DNA from: Piromyces finnis finn
Taxonomy: Eukaryota; Fungi; Neocallimastigomycota
Length of the DNA: 64,000 nucleotides
Assembly (NCBI GenBank): GCA_002104945.1
Contig: MCFH01000035.1
Span: 310,001-374,000, forward strand
Direction of reading: 5' to 3'
Below the pieces are notes generated by a model. It did not search any database. It was given only the letters and a program-made list of their open reading frames with translations, and had not been told where the DNA came from. This document shows, in pieces, positions 466 to 53,858 of this stretch (position 1 is the first letter of the stretch; the number at the start of each line of letters is the position of its first letter). Both the position numbers and the translations under genes were made by a program.

Positions 466-3400
466 TATATATTTCTTAGCAAAAATAATTTTTATTTACA
501 ATCTTCGAGCGGGTACTTAAAGAATTGTTAATCTCTTGTTCACATGAATGAGACGTTATTTCTGATTCAAGTTTACTTAATTTTAAATTAGATTCATTAT
601 AAGCCTTCTTTAACATAATATTTTCTTTGTTAATACGTTTTATTTCCTAAAAAATAAATAAAAATTTAACTTATTACTACACTACATTTTTTAACAATCA
701 TTTTTAATAATTTGATTTCATACCTCCTCATAGGTTAGTATATCTCTTCTATTCTTTTTGTTTTCTTCTTGCAAATTAATATTTAAAACATTTGCTTGTT
801 TTACTTGCTATAAATTATTTTATGGCAAAGATATATAAGTAAATATCTTTAATTCTATTTAAAAAAATAATGTGGTTTTAAATATTTACATACTTCTAAT
901 AATTTATTAGTTTGTTCTGTATTACTTAAATATTTTTCTTTAATACTTTCTAATTCTTTTATCTTGGCTACAATATCTAAATTATTATCTTTACTTTCCT
1001 TCATTGCACTTATTTCCTAAATTATTCAAAATAATATTTATTATTATCCATTAGGCTATCTAAATTACTTTATTTAAAAGAATGATATTTATATATATAG
1101 TCATAAATAACTTACTAATTTCAATTCTTCAACGTAAGAATTCTTAAATAATAATTCTCTTTTAAGACCTTTATTCATTTCTTTTAATTCTTCTATATCA
1201 TTTAGATTAATATCAATATTTGATTTTTGTAAAAGATTTTCATTTTCATTTTCCAATTCCTTTAAGGATTCCTTCATTTTTTCTAATTCCTTTGATTTTT
1301 TATCGAGTTGGTCTCTTAGCCTTTGAATAATTGAATCTTTTCTTAATACTTCAGACTCTATTTCACTAGTTGAAATCACTTGTTGAGTCTTCATTAAATT
1401 CTTTAAATATTGAAAAAAATATAGCAATAATAATAATAATAATAATAAAATAACAAAAGCTATGTTAATATTTCTTTTTCATTGTACTAGCACTTTTATA
1501 TATATAAATATTTACATTTTGAAGCTTCTCTATAAACTTATAATGTGTTTCTAATTCTTTACTTTGAGCTCCATTTAGTTTATGAAGATCTGTAATTGCA
1601 TCTTCGTTGATCTTAAAGTTTTTTCTCATTGTTTCAAGTTCCTGAAAAATAAAACAAAATAAATTTAATATTAAAATAGGAGAATTAGTAAAATAAAAAA
1701 TTGTTTTTTTTTTTTTTTAGTACAATGATATGTTGAAATTTACCTTATGAATCTTTATTAAATATTCATTATTAATATTTTCATTATTTGAATTGTTATT
1801 AGTATTATTATTATTGTTATTATCCTTTATCTTAAGGGAATTTATTAAACTTTCATTTTCCTTTTTCAAATTTTCGATTTCCTTATTTAATAAAATAATA
1901 GTATTATTAGAAGAATTAATAAGTTCCATATTGGTAATTGACATTTCATTACTTCTTTGAATATCAATAATTTTCTTTTTTAATTCGATAAATAAAATGA
2001 TTAAGAATATTAATAAGTATTTTCAATAAATTATTCCATTTTATATTTTATAGTATAAAAATTAAGGAATAAGCTTACAGTTTGAAGTTTATTAATAGTT
2101 TCATTCTTGGTTTCTAAATTATTTTTAAGTCTTAATCTTACAGAATCATTTTCATTTAATTTTTGATTTAATGAATATATTGTTTCATTTAATCTTTCAT
2201 TTTCCTTTTTATTGTTAAAAAAAAAAAGGTGTAATTAATATTATTTCTTTTTTTTTTTTTTTTTTCTAATTCATATATATATATATCATATGACATAATT
2301 ACTTTTTGTATTTTTTCTTTTTCTTCCATAATTTTCTCTACTTTTATTGCATTATTTTCAATAGTATCATGTAGAAGTTGCTCTCTTTTATACGCTTCGT
2401 ATAATTTTTTATCATTATTTGTTTTTTCAAATGTTTTATTATTTTTCATATCATTAAGTTCTTGATTTAAAATTTCATTTTCTTTTTCAATTTTTTCAGT
2501 ATGTTCTTTAAGGAAATCGTGTTCTTGTATTTCTTTATCAAATTCATTTTGAATATCTTCTAATTCTTTTTTTAATAAATCCACTGTTCCATTTAAATCT
2601 TTTATAATCTAAAAAAAAAAAATTGATTTATTTTAAAGATTTTCATTAATAAATTTACGAAATAGAAACAAAATAAAAATATATATTTTTGAAATTTTGA
2701 TTCATAGAATTCTATTCACAAATCATAAAATTCAATATATATTTGATTAACTAATTTTTTTAGTTGATATTCTGGTTATATTATATAAATATAAAATATA
2801 ATGATTAATACTTCATTCAATTTTTTATTTTCCTCCTTTAATGAATATTTATTTTTATTTTCTAGTTCCTGAATAGACTCAATTTTTTTCGACATATTCT
2901 TATTCTCTGATTTTTGTTGAATTAAATTATTTTCTAAATCCATAATTTTCTGTTATTAATTTATATAAAGTTTAAATGTATTGGTGGTATGAAATTAATA
3001 TTATTATTGTGTGTGTTTTTATATTCGAAAGTAATAATAATATAAAACAAAGTATTTTTAAATTTGAACATAAAATATATTTAATGGTTTAGTGATTTGT
3101 TATTACGTGAAGAAATAAAATATTATTAACATTAAAATAAATAATGATAGATATACTATGTGGATTGAGGATGTATATTAGTTTATATTATAATCTTTCC
3201 AATTATATATATATACCTTTTTTTGATCTTCAATTTGTTCTCTTAAATCAGAATTTTCAGTGATATACTTAAGTGTAGCATCACTACTACTTTCAATGCT
3301 TTTATTTAATCTCTCACTAAGTGCTTTATTTTTTACATTAAGTTGGTATATTTGATCATTCAAGTTATCTATTATCTATGGAATAATCGAAAAAATTATT

Positions 3401-38868: not shown

Positions 38869-39723
38869 ATGGCTTTAAACGATTCTCAAGTTAAGGATGA
38901 AATGGAAAAGATGGTAAATATTATTTATAGAATAAAATAATAAAACTATAAATTTTTTGATTTCGAAAATATTCTAAATGAATATCATAAATGAAAACAG
39001 GTTTCTTTCATCAAACAAGAAGCCAACGAAAAGGCCCGTGAAATTAAGATCAAGGCCGATGAAGAATTCAACATTGAAAAGGCCAAGATTGTTCGTCAAG
39101 AAACCATCGCCATTGAAGCTTTATACCAAAAGAAGGCCAAGCAAGCTGAAATTCAAAAGAAGATGTAAGTGTTTTTTATATAATAAATATAATAAACTGT
39201 AATAAATAGTATGATACAAAGAATATTAAATCAACATATAACAATATAAAATAGTGCTGAATCCAACCGTAACAACAAGACCAGACTTCAAATTCTTCAA
39301 GCTCGTCAACAATACCTTAACAAGATCAACGAAGAAGCCCAAAGAGCTCTTGTTGACTTCGCCAACAACGATCCAAAGTACGCTGAAACTATTAAGAACA
39401 TTGTTTTACAATCTCTTTACCAATTAATGGAAGAAGATATTACCATTGTTTGCCGTGAAAAGGATCTTAACACTGTTAAGAAGGCCGTCGAAGAAGTTGC
39501 TCCAACTTACAAGGAAAAGACTGGTAAGACTGCTACTGTTAAGTACTCTCCAAACTACCTCCCAGCTGCTTCCGCTGGTGGTATTATTATGTCCGGTTTC
39601 AATGACCGTATTGTCATCAACAACACCTTAGAAAACAGACTTGAAATCGCTAGTGATGAATTATTACCAGCTATTAAGACTTTACTTTACGGTGCTTCTG
39701 AATCCAGAAAATTCTACAACTAG
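38869..39723 (+). CDS. VMA4: V-type H+-ATPase subunit E; 3 exons
   Basis: MALNDSQVKDEMEKM|VSFIKQEANEKAREIKIKADEEFNIEKAKIVRQE...; C-terminus SAGGIIMSGFNDRIVINNTLENRLEI...LLPAIKTLLYGASESRKFYN*. Confidence 0.96.
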
Positions 39724-48256: not shown

Positions 48257-48922
48257 ATGAAACTATTAAATAGTTTAATATTTATTATAGGTTCTATATC
48301 ATGTGTATTAGGAACACCATATGTTGATAGAAATAAGAATAAAGATAGTGAAAAGTATGTGACAATAGTTCATCAAGATAAATATAAACCATCTTTCAAT
48401 AGAAATAGTTATGGTAATGAAAATAATAAAATTAAACCTGAACCAATTCCAACATCAACAATCACATTTAAACAAAGACCAAAAACTAAATGGGCTAGAA
48501 CCACATCTAAAAATAAAAGATTCCATAAATTTACAAATGATAAAAAAATATATAGAAGATCATTTTTCGCGCCAACTATGACTAAAGTAGGTGATAAAAT
48601 TGAACCAACCTTTGGTAAATATGTATATGATTCAGATGTACCTAGTTGTGTTAATCAAAAGGATTGTCAAGAAAAGAATATTCCAGATCTTTTAGTAGAA
48701 CATTTAAGGGATAAAACTGCTTTTAAACCAAGTGAAAAATATTATCATAAAACTCTTTCTTTTAAACCAGTATGTACTAATGGAATTTGTAAAGCACCAA
48801 TTATTACTGAATTACCATGTATGCATGGAAATTGTAGAGTATCAAAAGAAAACGATGAAGATATCAAACATAGTATTGGAAATAATATTAATGAAATGGA
48901 AAAAAGAGCTAACAAGAAATAA
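48257..48922 (+). CDS. Intronless 221-aa predicted secreted protein with six mature-region Cys and dibasic sites; function unknown
   Basis: Continuous ORF with host-like codons. N-terminal MKLLNSLIFIIGSISCVLG resembles a signal peptide. Cys pairs CVNQKDC, CTNGIC, CMHGNC. Confidence 0.75.
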   Translation: MKLLNSLIFIIGSISCVLGTPYVDRNKNKDSEKYVTIVHQDKYKPSFNRNSYGNENNKIKPEPIPTSTITFKQRPKTKWARTTSKNKRFHKFTNDKKIYRRSFFAPTMTKVGDKIEPTFGKYVYDSDVPSCVNQKDCQEKNIPDLLVEHLRDKTAFKPSEKYYHKTLSFKPVCTNGICKAPIITELPCMHGNCRVSKENDEDIKHSIGNNINEMEKRANKK

Positions 48923-49610: not shown

Positions 49611-52600
49611 ATGACTGATTTAAGTGACAACGAAAATATCAATTTATCATTTCCAGATACCAATGAACTTTTTTCAACATTTTCAAATGATGATATAATA
49701 ATAGATCCTTTACCCAATAAAGTAGAAAAAGTTATTGATAGCAATGAAAAAATAAATTATAATGACAGAAATAATTCCATGGAAAACACATTTTCCAGTA
49801 ATACTAATAAAATAAATGAAGATATTTATAATTTTTATAAAGCTTGTCAATCAACTATTATTGTACCTATCAATTACACTAAACTTTCTTCAAATCAAAA
49901 AAAAATTGTACAAGATACTATCCAAAATCTGCTTCTTAATTTAAAACAAGAAAATGAAGAAGAAAAAGAACCTACTATACAAAATCAATTGGAACAGGAT
50001 GAAATTTATGCACAACAAATTATCGATGATTTAAATAGAAAAAGAGAAATAGTTAACTATTTAGAATATTTATTAAGTGATGAAAATAGAATTTATGATT
50101 ATTATATTGATTCATTGTATAAACGTAGTGGAGAAGGATATATTAAATTAGTATATCTTAATAAATATCTTCAATATATTAATCTTAATGTAGCAAATAC
50201 CGATAGCTTTGAAGAAAATCCAGATGTCATTTTGATCAAGAAATCTGTTGCCTTAATTTCAAACTTTTTAGAATTTAATACGGATGGAAATGCCATTCGG
50301 TATAACAGAAATTGTGATCCATTTTGTAAATGTTTGGATAATTATACCATTGAATTTGTATCAAGCCAAAATGGTAAAGAAAGTTCCCAAGATAGTATTG
50401 AAACTCATTCAAAAGAAAATGATAAAAAATATAATAACATACCCCATATACCCATTCTAACAACCGAAAATAATAAAGAAGATAATACAGAAAACGATAA
50501 AGAAATAAAAGATAATAAAAATAGCAGTGAAACAAAGTCAGAAATAAAGGATAATATAACAAATGAAGATGAAATAAAAATGGAAATTGAAGAAGAATCT
50601 GACATGGAAATCAGTGATGATGAAGATTCTGATACCCTTGAGTTATACAAAGAATCAAGTAGTAAAGATTCATCACCAGAAATGGAATCTAATTCGTTAA
50701 TAACCAATGAAACAGAAAAGGAAAAAGAGGATGAAAATAAGAAAGCTATAGTAAAAGATGATGAAAATACGAATAATAATGATTTTAAAAACCAAAATAA
50801 GATTACGCCAAATGATAATGATAATAATAACCATTCATCGGATCAAACGATAGAAACAAGTAATGAAGAAGAAGAGAATATGCTATCAGTCACATCATTG
50901 GTAGAAACAGAAAAGGAAATAAAAAAAGAAAAAGACGATCATGAAAATAATAGTAAAAGTATAACAAATAATTCATCCGATAATATTATGAATAAGGATG
51001 AAAAAAAGGATTATACCAATAACTCACTTTTAGGGAGCAATAATACCAATAATGATAATCAGAATGATATGATTGATGATACCCAAGATTTAATCCATGA
51101 AAATCAAAATAAAATAGAAGATGAAAATAATGAAATAATGGAATCTCAAATTAATATTACTAAAAATGAATCAAGTAAAGTTGTTAGTCAAGAAGACAAA
51201 GAGAATAAAATGGATATCACTTCAATAAATGAAGATGAAGATCAAATGGAAACGATAATACCAATGAATGAAATTAATGATGTAACAAAAGAATCCAAAA
51301 TGGAAGAAACCACCACTATGGAAGAAAATAATTATGAGACTACATCAGAATCCATTCCAACATTAGAAAAAGATGATGATCAAGTATCAGGAAAAGATTT
51401 AAGAAATTTATTTGATGATTATGATAATGATGAAGAAGAAGATGAAGAGGTAAAAGGTCCACCAACCTTTATTACTCTTAATGGTACTTTCCAATGGTTA
51501 ACAGAAGCGGATACGGTAAAGGAGACCAAAATACATATTTTCCATAATCTTAAGGAAGCAGAGGATGAAAGTCAAGTTGAATATGATTGTAATCGTGAGA
51601 TCGTTTTAGGAGAGGAATTAGATCCATTTAAAAAAGAAATTTTTGGTTGTTTTAATTGTCGTTCAATTTATCATGAACTCAAAGATTGTCCTCTTCCACG
51701 CAATTCAGAAGAAATTAGAAAGAATCGAGCATTATTTAAAGAACTTAGTAACGCCACCACCAATGCTCGGTATCATGAAGTTGTCGCCGAAGAAGAACTT
51801 TTTTCCAAATTTAAACCAGGTCAAATTTCAGAGGAATTACGAGAAGCCTTAGGACTTGAAGGAGATGAAGATATTCCACTTTATGTAAAACGAATGCATA
51901 CCTATGGTTATCCACCAGGGTATCTTGGTTTCACAGAAAAAGATGATCCTTATCAAATTAGAAATTTCAATGATTCCGAGGAACAAGCAAACGATGAATT
52001 AAAAATCTATTCGGAAGAAGAAAATGTAGGTAAGGCAACCAATACCACTCAACATGACAATGCTTCAATTTCATTGAATGGAAAAGAAGAAGATGAACAA
52101 AAGGAGGGTGACAATGCTGAAAAAAAGGAAGAAGAAGATCAAGCAAAACAGACAAAAAGTCAAGTTAAAAAGAAGACGGTTCAACTTTATAAATATCCAG
52201 GTTATAATGCTCCAATTGAACCAAGAAAGAAGGAAGAGGTGAAAAAAGAAGAAGAAGAAGAAAAGAAAGAAAAAGAAGAAGAAGAAGAAGAAGAAGAAGA
52301 AAAGCAAGAGGAAAAGACAAAAGATAAAGATCATAATGATCATGATGATTTTATGATTAAAGTACCTGTAAAAGTAACAAAAACCGAAAATACCGACAAA
52401 GATTATATTTCTTTTGATTCTACCACCACCACAAACAATAATAATAAAAAGCATGATACCACTAATAAAACAAGCAACGACACCAAAGAAAATTGGGAGG
52501 ACCGCCATAAAAAGCATTATGATGACAATAAAAGCAAGAGTAAAAATAAGAGTAGGCCTTCCACAAAAAACTATAATAGAAATAAGAATAATAAAAATGA

Positions 52601-53858
52601 TAATAACTATGGTTATGGAAAAAGTGACCATGATAATAGTACCAATAATAACTATGGGTATGGCAAGAAGGATTATAAAAATAATAACTATGGTTTACCT
52701 GCTCCTAATGATTATACCAACTATTCAAATGGTAGGAACACCACCACCACCGATAATAATAACTTTAACAATAATAATCTAGGTTATAATAATAATAATA
52801 GTAATAATACCTATTCTAATGATTACTCCATGACATCCATGACACCTAATTATACTCCAATGAACCAACCACCACCGATGAATGATTTCAATAACATAAA
52901 CACCAACAATAATTATGGTATGAATAATTCTAATGATTATCCTTCCATGAATAACATGAATAATTATAATGGAATGCCTACCACAATCAATGAAATTAAC
53001 AACCATCATGGTAACAACCTTAACACAATGAATGCTATGAGCACTATGAACAATATGAATAGTATGGACAATATGAACAGCATGAACAGCATGAACAGTA
53101 TGAACACTATGGCCAACATGAATAATGTGAACAGCATGAATAGTATGAACAATATAGGAAATATCAATGATTATGCTGCAATGAACAACCCGATGAATAG
53201 TATAGGAAATATTGGTAACTTTAATAATGATGGAAGCAACGTGAATCAATACAACTGTTCCAACACCACTAATTATAATTTTAATACAATGAATACGATG
53301 AATCATTTTAACGGAATGAACGCACCAAATGACTATTCATCCATGAATAATTACAATAATAGGAATACCACCATGGATAATAACTATGGCATGCCAATGA
53401 TGACCACGAATAATAATAACTATGGAATGAACACGGTGAATAATGCTAACACCATGAATAATTATGGTATGGGAAATAGTAGCCATAGGACCATGAATTT
53501 TAACAATTATCAAGAACCATCCTCGACGACCAATTTTAATTCAAGTGAGTCGGCGTCCTACTCCACAAAATCGTACAAGTCCTACACGAATAATAATGAC
53601 AAAAAATCCAATTATTATCATCGAAAAAATCGCAGTGGTAGCGACAGTAACAATCATCATTATCATAAAAGGAATCATTCGTATGAGGATAATAATGACC
53701 TACCACCGTCAAAGAATCATGCCATCAAGAGGCATAAAATAAGTTATGAAGATGTCGATGATACCCGCCGTCATAGTACAAATGAACCACCGCCTTCAAA
53801 AGTTAATTCTTTTACAGAGGGGGAGGATGAATTAGAAGAAGGTGAAATTATTGAATAA
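49611..53858 (+). CDS. ZCCHC8: ZCCHC8-like protein (zinc knuckle + PSP domain; NEXT complex scaffold homolog), 1415 aa, apparently intronless
   Basis: CCHC knuckle CFNCRSIYHELKDCPLPRN (from 51648), followed by RYH and the PSP domain FKPGQISEELREALG...YVKRMHTYGYPPGYL (51810-51926). This knuckle-then-PSP order is characteristic of ZCCHC8 rather than SF3B2/Cus1. Confidence 0.88.
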   Translation: MTDLSDNENINLSFPDTNELFSTFSNDDIIIDPLPNKVEKVIDSNEKINYNDRNNSMENTFSSNTNKINEDIYNFYKACQSTIIVPINYTKLSSNQKKIVQDTIQNLLLNLKQENEEEKEPTIQNQLEQDEIYAQQIIDDLNRKREIVNYLEYLLSDENRIYDYYIDSLYKRSGEGYIKLVYLNKYLQYINLNVANTDSFEENPDVILIKKSVALISNFLEFNTDGNAIRYNRNCDPFCKCLDNYTIEFVSSQNGKESSQDSIETHSKENDKKYNNIPHIPILTTENNKEDNTENDKEIKDNKNSSETKSEIKDNITNEDEIKMEIEEESDMEISDDEDSDTLELYKESSSKDSSPEMESNSLITNETEKEKEDENKKAIVKDDENTNNNDFKNQNKITPNDNDNNNHSSDQTIETSNEEEENMLSVTSLVETEKEIKKEKDDHENNSKSITNNSSDNIMNKDEKKDYTNNSLLGSNNTNNDNQNDMIDDTQDLIHENQNKIEDENNEIMESQINITKNESSKVVSQEDKENKMDITSINEDEDQMETIIPMNEINDVTKESKMEETTTMEENNYETTSESIPTLEKDDDQVSGKDLRNLFDDYDNDEEEDEEVKGPPTFITLNGTFQWLTEADTVKETKIHIFHNLKEAEDESQVEYDCNREIVLGEELDPFKKEIFGCFNCRSIYHELKDCPLPRNSEEIRKNRALFKELSNATTNARYHEVVAEEELFSKFKPGQISEELREALGLEGDEDIPLYVKRMHTYGYPPGYLGFTEKDDPYQIRNFNDSEEQANDELKIYSEEENVGKATNTTQHDNASISLNGKEEDEQKEGDNAEKKEEEDQAKQTKSQVKKKTVQLYKYPGYNAPIEPRKKEEVKKEEEEEKKEKEEEEEEEEEKQEEKTKDKDHNDHDDFMIKVPVKVTKTENTDKDYISFDSTTTTNNNNKKHDTTNKTSNDTKENWEDRHKKHYDDNKSKSKNKSRPSTKNYNRNKNNKNDNNYGYGKSDHDNSTNNNYGYGKKDYKNNNYGLPAPNDYTNYSNGRNTTTTDNNNFNNNNLGYNNNNSNNTYSNDYSMTSMTPNYTPMNQPPPMNDFNNINTNNNYGMNNSNDYPSMNNMNNYNGMPTTINEINNHHGNNLNTMNAMSTMNNMNSMDNMNSMNSMNSMNTMANMNNVNSMNSMNNIGNINDYAAMNNPMNSIGNIGNFNNDGSNVNQYNCSNTTNYNFNTMNTMNHFNGMNAPNDYSSMNNYNNRNTTMDNNYGMPMMTTNNNNYGMNTVNNANTMNNYGMGNSSHRTMNFNNYQEPSSTTNFNSSESASYSTKSYKSYTNNNDKKSNYYHRKNRSGSDSNNHHYHKRNHSYEDNNDLPPSKNHAIKRHKISYEDVDDTRRHSTNEPPPSKVNSFTEGEDELEEGEIIE

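Follow-up and report, generated by a model that had tools for sequence, protein, structure and literature searches.

How NEXT comes to capped nascent transcripts is known chiefly from work on human cells, in which the complex is reported to reach ARS2 via ZC3H18 (PMC10720265). A locus within a 64,000-nucleotide stretch of Piromyces finnis DNA (the whole of which is hereafter termed the window) raises the question of whether the scaffold of such a complex may dock on ARS2 by itself, as an initial annotation had proposed from the C-terminus of a ZCCHC8-like protein. We find that the motif behind this proposal is present and conserved, and that it belongs to a much wider pattern within the ZCCHC8 family; the positions of all features discussed are collected in Table 1.

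On the evidence of sequence and profile comparisons, the gene product is a ZCCHC8-type scaffold, in agreement with the initial annotation. Its best named matches are ZCCHC8, it carries a Pfam PSP domain, and the CCHC knuckle together with the PSP region gives a collinear match to the human ZCCHC8 chains in structures of NEXT (7z4y, 7z52 and 7s7b; E-value 4e-21). The PSP segment additionally matches the ZCCHC8 peptide of the RBM7–ZCCHC8 crystal structure (5lxr_B; E-value 7e-8), the corresponding segment of human ZCCHC8 being the one that binds RBM7 (structure 5lxr). Fungal relatives align to the window protein from approximately aa 650 onwards. The conserved segment immediately before the knuckle occupies the position of the arch-interacting motif (AIM) of human ZCCHC8, at residues 178–220 directly ahead of the knuckle (PMC9278407), and of the human segment that wraps the MTR4 KOW domain, to which it may be equivalent. 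Nothing in the sequence of the window protein matched the dimerisation/AIM module at the N-terminus of human ZCCHC8, and an AlphaFold2 model of aa 61–263, built from a two-row alignment, had a pLDDT of 38.

Table 1. Features of the ZCCHC8-like gene and its product, with positions in the window
Feature	Residues (aa)	Position	Strand	Basis
ZCCHC8-like gene	1415 in total	49611..53858	+	Single uninterrupted ATG-to-stop ORF, from the ORF list and translation
Divergent La motif (LaM, winged helix)	142–230	50034..50300	+	Sub-threshold match to Pfam La and profile match to LARP6
Acidic SDMEISD	330–336	50598..50618	+	Kept in the window protein and N. sp. 'constans' within a diverged acidic region
Conserved pre-knuckle segment	616–679	51456..51647	+	78–80 % identity, window protein versus N. 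sp. 'constans'
CCHC zinc knuckle	680–693	51648..51689	+	C, C, H and C invariant in the family alignment; aligns to the human knuckle in 7z4y, 7z52 and 7s7b
PSP domain	735–772	51813..51926	+	Pfam PF04046, E-value 5.5e-13, 48.9 bits (cut-off, 19.6)
LYKYPGYNAPI, the family-wide YPGxN motif	859–869	52185..52217	+	Family alignment and consensus
Asn-rich low-complexity disordered region	~960–1400	52488..53810	+	30 % Asn
Basic NLS-like KRHK, then YEDVDD	1373–1384	53727..53762	+	Partly kept in N. sp. 'constans' (pairwise tail alignment)
C-terminal ARM, DELEEGEIIE		53826..53855	+	gat gaa tta gaa gaa ggt gaa att att gaa
Stop codon TAA		53856..53858	+	Two residues past the ARM core in the window protein and N. 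sp. 'constans'

Beyond the YPGxN motif, the protein continues into a long Asn-rich region that is 28–54 % identical to that of the ortholog in a second gut fungus, Neocallimastix sp. 'constans' (N. sp. 'constans'), with many gaps. Single-sequence AlphaFold2 modelling of the last 200 aa returned a mean pLDDT of 45 and no secondary structure. The KRHK element near the end of this region may serve as an NLS. Towards the N-terminus, the short acidic element SDMEISD is similar to the DM[DE][IL]S[DE] sequence in which Mucoromycota and Kickxellales orthologs end. A neighbouring ORF (48257–48922) has a signal peptide and was without a match in a Pfam search. Four public runs, from three studies, contain the stretch, although their kind (RNA or DNA) is a guess.

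The C-terminus itself reads as the initial annotation had described it, with DELEEGEIIE directly followed by the stop codon. Its core, EEGEI (aa 1409–1413; 53835–53849), fits the consensus of the ARS2 recruitment motif (ARM), [DE][DE]G[DE][ILV] (PMC10720265, PMC9402713), so that its assignment to this motif type also stands. Moreover, the tail is identical over eight of eight consecutive residues (DELEEGEI) to the human FLASH FARB peptide, 931-DELEEGEIRSDSE-943, a 13-mer that suffices for micromolar binding to ARS2 (PMC5923425); the annotation had given the core of this peptide correctly. The binding mode of ARMs is known from the crystal structure of Red1–Ars2, and the contact residues of ARS2 are reported to be well conserved among species (PMC9402713). 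In the window protein the motif lies at the extreme C-terminus, in a tail predicted to be disordered, which suits a linear motif, for which disorder is required. Three other readings of the tail were set aside by eye: a SUMO-interaction motif needs more than two hydrophobic residues and only two are present, the last residue is not that of a PDZ or EEVD-type C-terminal ligand, and an MTR4 arch-interacting motif differs in sequence.

Strong evidence for function comes from the family as a whole. Using a query free of the ARM, we retrieved 154 ZCCHC8-family homologs, 60 of which contain the motif, compared with 3.3 expected from composition (~18-fold); seven control patterns, five of them reorderings and two with Ala or Ser replacing Gly, were each found in only 2–8 of the same proteins. 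This enrichment argues strongly for a functional motif in the ZCCHC8 family. Two-thirds of the ARMs (40/60) occupy one homologous site, between the PSP domain and YPGxN, in insects, molluscs, plants, Ambispora and Coemansia, whilst the family overall includes N-terminal, internal and C-terminal positions. The same stretch contains no ARM in either the window protein or N. sp. 'constans'. Judged by these sequences, the motif is no peculiarity of gut fungi, as ZCCHC8 proteins of insects, molluscs, plants and Zoopagomycota have it. It is found in none of the seven vertebrate-type proteins, and in two mammal-type sequences (one named as whale) the ancestral ARM site holds a degenerate EAGE[VL]. 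Among Kickxellales and Dimargaris orthologs, 36 of 38 end in [LVI]EDGE[C/L/V]DMxxS[DE], position 5 of the ARM being Cys, a residue outside the published consensus, in 33 of these 36 tails; ZCCHC8 of Coemansia spiralis retains an internal ARM as well. Orthologs from Mucorales (Phycomyces, Cokeromyces and Mycotypha) and from Funneliformis have no ARM anywhere, and the motif is therefore dispensable in some fungi. The comparison of C-termini that the initial annotation had proposed gave a divided answer, the motif being terminal in N. sp. 'constans' but missing from these latter orthologs, which counts in part against the proposal.

The most serious alternative is that the conserved acidic C-terminus is functional but has a partner other than ARS2. 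This partner could be the MTR4 helicase, in which case the acidic tail would substitute for the basic C-terminal domain by which metazoan ZCCHC8 binds and activates MTR4, or it could be a protein that engages the adjacent DMxxS[DE]-type acidic motifs in a kinase- or phospho-dependent manner. In keeping with this, the metazoan-type C-terminal tail (G-x-Y...L-x-K-V) is missing from the fungal orthologs; furthermore, in Kickxellales EDGE[C] is fused to DMEESD, which is also the terminal element of ARM-less Mucoromycota orthologs, so an acidic terminus may have a separate function. Against it stand the exact eight-residue identity to a validated ARS2-binding peptide and an enrichment that is confined to the ordered pattern and does not extend to reordered acidic ones. 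The varied places of the ARM along the protein fit a portable handle for ARS2 better than a positional contact with MTR4, and the known motifs that interact with the MTR4 arch are unlike the tail. We consider this alternative unlikely.

Less likely still is that the tail is a functionless product of acidic, low-complexity, AT-rich coding DNA, arisen by chance and kept by shared ancestry. Only two related gut-fungal species are available to judge this. The N. sp. 'constans' ortholog (ORF L001:6001-10272, 1423 aa) ends in DDMEEGEILE and a stop after ~500 poorly alignable residues, and in a DNA alignment the motif and stop form the best-conserved block of the tail, although GAA, GGT and ATT are favoured codons of the genome and nucleotide identity over the motif hence adds little weight. 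A core-sequence word search for further gut-fungal orthologs returned the N. sp. 'constans' protein only, and no ortholog emerged when a metagenome scan was made with the core of the two species. A 500-aa query was swamped by low-complexity words, the matches of a profile search were almost all from Kickxellales, and the three matches to a degenerate GYPPGYLGF DNA pattern were all due to chance, in GC-rich contigs. Even with two species, however, most positions of the ~100 aa ahead of the motif differ (28–30 % identity), whilst the stop lies at the same offset in both. The pattern occurs once in the 1415 aa of the window protein, and EEGEI is its sole match among the window's six-frame ORFs of at least 100 aa (6652 aa in total). 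Of the shuffled versions of the protein, 3.8 % had at least one ARM at any position and 0.015 % had one among the last 10 residues, the number expected in those residues being 1.5e-4. The family-wide enrichment, too, is hard to explain without function.

That the Asn-rich 3' part is instead an intron, leaving the motif outside the mature protein and the true C-terminus elsewhere, is very improbable: the deposited N. sp. 'constans' model P0001 (923 aa) does splice this region out and has a different tail, but that tail is located past the ORF stop and resembles translated AT-rich non-coding DNA, whereas in both species ~540 codons stay open and lead into the shared, conserved motif and its stop (for the last 540 codons of the window ORF, a chance probability of ~4e-20 given the local base composition, with 42 and 119 stops in the other two frames).

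The reading that we favour, and hold to be reasonably probable, is that the ARM of the window protein docks ARS2 directly and so recruits a NEXT-like scaffold to capped RNA. On this reading the gene encodes a ZCCHC8-type scaffold for a NEXT-like complex, an adaptor that hands nuclear RNAs to the exosome, and its product displays EEGEI at the end of a disordered, Asn-rich tether of ~450 residues. The acidic motif is predicted to dock on ARS2, at a basic patch in its C-terminal zinc-finger leg; ARS2 itself would be associated with the cap-binding complex on nascent Pol II transcripts. Docking would in this way bring the scaffold directly to capped RNAs, making a ZC3H18-type bridge unnecessary, and would place it in competition with other ARM-bearing effectors for one site on ARS2. 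The partners expected from homology are the MTR4 helicase and, bound at the PSP segment, an RBM7-like RRM protein. Here we infer that this fungus has ARS2, that the tail binds it and what binding would bring about. For the anaerobic gut fungi, the model predicts a contact between a cap-bound complex and an exosome adaptor that can be altered by point mutation.

A separate lead lies at the other end of the protein, where a divergent La motif is present. Taken alone, the window segment scores below threshold against Pfam La (E-value 0.023; 15 bits, with the cut-off at 37), as do the orthologs from N. sp. 'constans', Dimargaris and Cokeromyces, and a single-sequence search of the PDB with the window N-terminus gave no match. 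A profile of the N-terminal region, however, matched the LaM of LARP6 (9ngx_A and 2mtf_A) with an E-value of 4e-11 over 83 of 87 positions, with La at 1e-4 and LARP7 at 2e-4. As a transitive link, a profile built without the gut-fungal rows recovers the window segment with an E-value of 1e-4. The motif is common to the window protein and the Mucorales and Dimargaris orthologs, but was not seen in animal or plant ZCCHC8 homologs. A La motif on a NEXT scaffold may point to RNA 3'-end recognition by the fungal complex.

Compared with human ZCCHC8, the window protein has the same spacing from knuckle to PSP domain and a YPGxN motif after the PSP domain; its conserved pre-knuckle segment lies at the place where the human protein contacts the MTR4 KOW domain. 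It differs in having double the length, in containing large disordered inserts, acidic and Asn-rich, and in carrying a canonical ARM, absent from the seven vertebrate-type proteins. Its tail is acidic, whilst animal ZCCHC8 proteins end in a basic amphipathic tail; the metazoan-type MTR4-activating C-terminal domain is absent from the window protein and from all fungal orthologs seen, and may therefore define the metazoan branch only.

With the ELM class LIG_ARS2_EDGEI_1 (FLASH FARB, S. pombe Red1, ZFC3H1, ZC3H18, ZC3H4, NCBP3 and PHAX), the window protein shares the fit to the consensus, the location of the motif in a disordered region and its occurrence in a nuclear RNA-decay factor. ZCCHC8 is, however, not among the carriers named in the papers cited for this class, and no publication assigning an ARM to ZCCHC8 came to our notice. 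The window motif is present as a single copy, in contrast to the tandem copies of several zinc-finger effectors. Known effectors usually have the ARM at internal or N-terminal positions with more acidic residues after it, whereas in the window protein only I-E and the free carboxylate follow. Closer to hand are the tails of Kickxellales and Dimargaris, which likewise belong to ZCCHC8 of early-diverging fungi and likewise consist of a terminal EDGE-type acidic motif after a hydrophobic residue; these differ in mostly having Cys at position 5 and in extending for six more acidic residues beyond the motif.

The nearest precedent for the proposed wiring is found in plants. In Arabidopsis, SERRATE (ARS2) binds ZCCHC8A/B directly, and plants are without ZC3H18 (PMC7337926, PMC8894942). 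The initial annotation had regarded an ARS2–NEXT link borne by ZCCHC8 as undescribed; as this binding was already published, the novelty of the wiring was overstated, and what stands of the proposal is the presence and conservation of the motif and the plausibility of the mechanism. By analogy, the window protein and Arabidopsis ZCCHC8A/B would each link NEXT to the cap-binding complex by direct contact with ARS2 and without ZC3H18. The papers accessible to us on the plant interaction name no motif. Plant homologs from Impatiens and Diphasiastrum have canonical ARMs a few residues past the PSP domain, and we propose that a conserved ARM in plant ZCCHC8 offers a simple molecular explanation for the binding of SERRATE. 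In the window protein, by contrast, this ancestral post-PSP site is empty and the ARM lies at the extreme C-terminus.

The ARM thus occupies a conserved site in ZCCHC8 of plants, insects and molluscs, is C-terminal in two lineages of fungi and does not occur in the vertebrate-type proteins, a distribution which suggests that a direct ZCCHC8–ARS2 link may be the usual arrangement and the vertebrate wiring the exception. A broader synthesis, which we put forward tentatively and as possible rather than probable, would hold that an ARS2-docking motif is ancestral and widespread in ZCCHC8 (plants, insects, molluscs and early-diverging fungi) and that direct docking of NEXT on ARS2 is the default eukaryotic wiring, the gut-fungal motif having moved to the C-terminus. 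On this synthesis, the La motif and the RRM of a PSP-bound RBM7 partner could act as a split La-module, such that one protein would read both the capped 5' end of its targets, via ARS2, and their 3' end. The ZC3H18-bridged form of vertebrates would then be derived, with EAGE[VL] as its relic in mammals.

The ZCCHC8-like protein of the window terminates in DELEEGEIIE followed directly by a TAA stop codon, and translation of the single ORF that it closes thereby confirmed the C-terminus read in the initial annotation. Its EEGEI core is the sole match to the ARS2 recruitment motif (ARM) consensus [DE][DE]G[DE][ILV] (Polak et al., 2023, PMC10720265), both within the protein and among all window ORFs of ≥ 100 aa. 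ARMs are an established class (ELM LIG_ARS2_EDGEI_1, 21 instances), for which a relaxed form, [ED][ED]GE[ILV], was reported together with the Red1–Ars2 crystal structure (Foucher et al., 2022, PMC9402713). The FLASH core given initially, DELEEGEI, was correct: the FLASH peptide 931-DELEEGEIRSDSE-943 is a validated ligand that binds ARS2 with an affinity of 0.5–5 μM (Schulze et al., 2018, PMC5923425), and the window protein therefore has eight consecutive residues in common with such a ligand. In the best-supported reading, which is plausible, EEGEI at the C-terminus would dock on ARS2; we infer this binding, as well as the existence of ARS2 in the organism and any effect on RNA decay. Contact would be made, as by Red1, with the basic surface that the zinc finger presents on the C-terminal leg of ARS2, and a scaffold resembling that of NEXT (the nuclear RNA-decay complex scaffolded by ZCCHC8) would thereby be anchored directly to cap-bound nascent RNA and would compete with other ARM carriers. 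Set beside the residues shared with FLASH, the alternative that the acidic tail has a partner other than ARS2 is one that we regard as unlikely.

That the motif arose by chance and is non-functional seems less probable still. Shuffling the window protein produced an ARM at any position in 3.8 % of trials, and in the final ten residues in 0.015 %; G+C content is ∼17 % in the window and ∼30 % across the ZCCHC8-like gene. Furthermore, the ortholog from Neocallimastix sp. 'constans' matches the window protein at eight of the 11 C-terminal residues and keeps the ARM core intact, and the best-conserved tail block in the DNA alignment of the two is GAAGAAGGTGAAATT plus the stop codon, the weight of which is limited by codon bias. 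No further gut-fungal ortholog was found by word, profile, metagenome or DNA-pattern searches.

The closest database relative, and the only one that close, is P0001, the deposited 923-aa model of the N. 'constans' gene (L001:6001-10676, GCA_050613775.1), which splices out the Asn-rich part and has a tail lying past the ORF stop. At the same locus we found an uninterrupted 1423-aa ORF (L001:6001-10272), collinear with the window protein and terminating in DDMEEGEILE plus a stop codon; as such, P0001 appears to be shortened by a false long intron. We consider the long ORF to be the genuine product because the corresponding 540 codons are open in the window (P ∼4e-20 at local composition), whilst the other two frames contain 42 and 119 stops. 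A mis-called C-terminus, to which the P0001 model would point, is thus very improbable.

The named relatives of the window protein are ZCCHC8 from animals, plants and fungi. The region from knuckle through PSP domain is collinear with the human ZCCHC8 chains of three NEXT cryo-EM structures (7z4y, 7z52 and 7s7b; E ∼4e-21), and also aligns to the ZCCHC8 peptide co-crystallised with the RBM7 RRM (5lxr_B, E 7e-8). Disorder is predicted for the final 200 residues (pLDDT 45). Within this tail, a KRHK basic patch followed by YEDVDD is partly kept in N. 'constans'; lying closely upstream of the ARM, the patch may represent a nuclear localisation signal. Elsewhere, an acidic SDMEISD is identical in the N. 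'constans' protein within diverged surroundings, and orthologs from Mucoromycota, Kickxellales and Dimargaris terminate in the same pattern, DM[DE][IL]S[DE]. The ORF directly upstream of the gene specifies a signal-peptide-like N-terminus and several Cys residues, with no Pfam match, and is not an MPP6 gene.

Features of the window and of its ZCCHC8-like protein, with identity to the N. 'constans' protein
Feature	Window position (strand)	Residues (aa)	Identity	Remark
V-type ATPase subunit E, C-terminal half	39427-39723 (+)			Pfam PF01991, E 4e-20; presumably one exon of the gene
Upstream ORF	48257-48922 (+)	221 in total
ZCCHC8-like ORF	49611-53858 (+)	1415 in total
N-terminal domain, divergent La motif	50034-50300 (+)	142-230	52-70 %
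Acidic low-complexity region		260-600
SDMEISD	50598-50618 (+)	330-336
CCHC knuckle		680-693		Alignment to human ZCCHC8 structures
PSP domain		735-772		Pfam, E 5.5e-13
Knuckle-PSP core			76-80 %
YPGxN motif		859-869		Family-wide; downstream of PSP
Asn-rich low-complexity region		960-1400		30 % Asn
Disordered regions			12-54 %
∼100 residues preceding the motif		1301-1400	28-30 %
KRHK patch and YEDVDD	53727-53762 (+)	1373-1384
Final 15 residues			60 %
DELEEGEIIE	53826-53855 (+)			Followed by TAA
EEGEI core		1409-1413

The conserved N-terminal domain is a divergent La motif. At corresponding positions, sub-threshold Pfam La matches were obtained for Dimargaris (E 1.6e-6), the window protein (0.023), the N. 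'constans' ORF (0.042) and Cokeromyces (0.073), and a profile of seven fungal segments matches the LARP6 La motif over nearly its full length (E 4e-11), as well as La and LARP7. With the window and N. 'constans' rows removed, the profile still recovers both (1e-4 and 4e-7), along with the Phycomyces and Mycotypha orthologs; language-model features agree, as a lead only. The profile detected no La motif in Coemansia, animal or plant ZCCHC8 homologs, and a literature search found neither a paper naming 'La motif' and ZCCHC8 together nor a fusion of the two. Speculatively, this domain and the RBM7 RRM could form a split La-module.

Across the family, an exhaustive search with an ARM-free query (aa 600-800) returned 761 relatives, the best 150 of which were listed. 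At least one ARM was present in 60 of 154 family proteins, vs 3.3 expected from the composition of each. Seven control patterns, of which five shuffled the order of the residue classes and two replaced Gly by Ala or Ser, were each found in 2–8 proteins. A hydrophobic residue precedes the ARM in 39 proteins, as it does in FLASH and the window protein. Among 139 non-vertebrate-type proteins, the ARM lies between PSP and YPGxN in 40 and near the N-terminus in 16. The former interval holds one homologous ARM place, by alignment, in Rhodnius, Impatiens, the lycophyte Diphasiastrum, Ambispora and Coemansia spiralis, and also holds an ARM in molluscs (Patella, Pomacea and Argonauta) and insects (Gryllus, Copidosoma and Hetaerina). 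None of seven vertebrate-type proteins carries an ARM; two mammal-type homologs, P0021 (whale) and P0026, have EAGEV or EAGEL in this interval, one residue off consensus, which may be a decayed relic, and shark- and fish-like ZCCHC8 have nothing like EAGE[VL] there. The C-terminus reads [LVI]EDGE[C/L/V]DMxxS[DE] in 36 of 38 Kickxellales and Dimargaris orthologs (position five being Cys in 33). Mucorales (Phycomyces, Cokeromyces and Mycotypha) and Funneliformis orthologs lack the ARM and retain only the DM[DE][IL]S[DE]-type tail, and the window and N. 'constans' proteins lack it at the ancestral post-PSP site, carrying it at the C-terminus instead. An ARM that is strongly enriched, favours an ancestral site and has moved elsewhere in some lineages behaves as a functional short linear motif should if it turns over in disordered sequence.

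This family-level pattern is of more interest than the single gut-fungal case, and we found no paper reporting an ARM in any ZCCHC8 in a literature search that covered mostly open-access papers and not the ELM instance list. Direct docking by the scaffold, as initially proposed, is plausible and backed by the family-wide enrichment, whilst its novelty was overstated. The window protein lacks the basic C-terminal domain of metazoan ZCCHC8. Human NEXT is reported to reach ARS2 via ZC3H18 (PMC10720265, PMC9278407). Direct binding of ZCCHC8A/B by SERRATE has been described in Arabidopsis, where homologs of ZC3H18 are seemingly absent (PMC7337926, PMC8894942); the initially proposed wiring is thus already known from plants.
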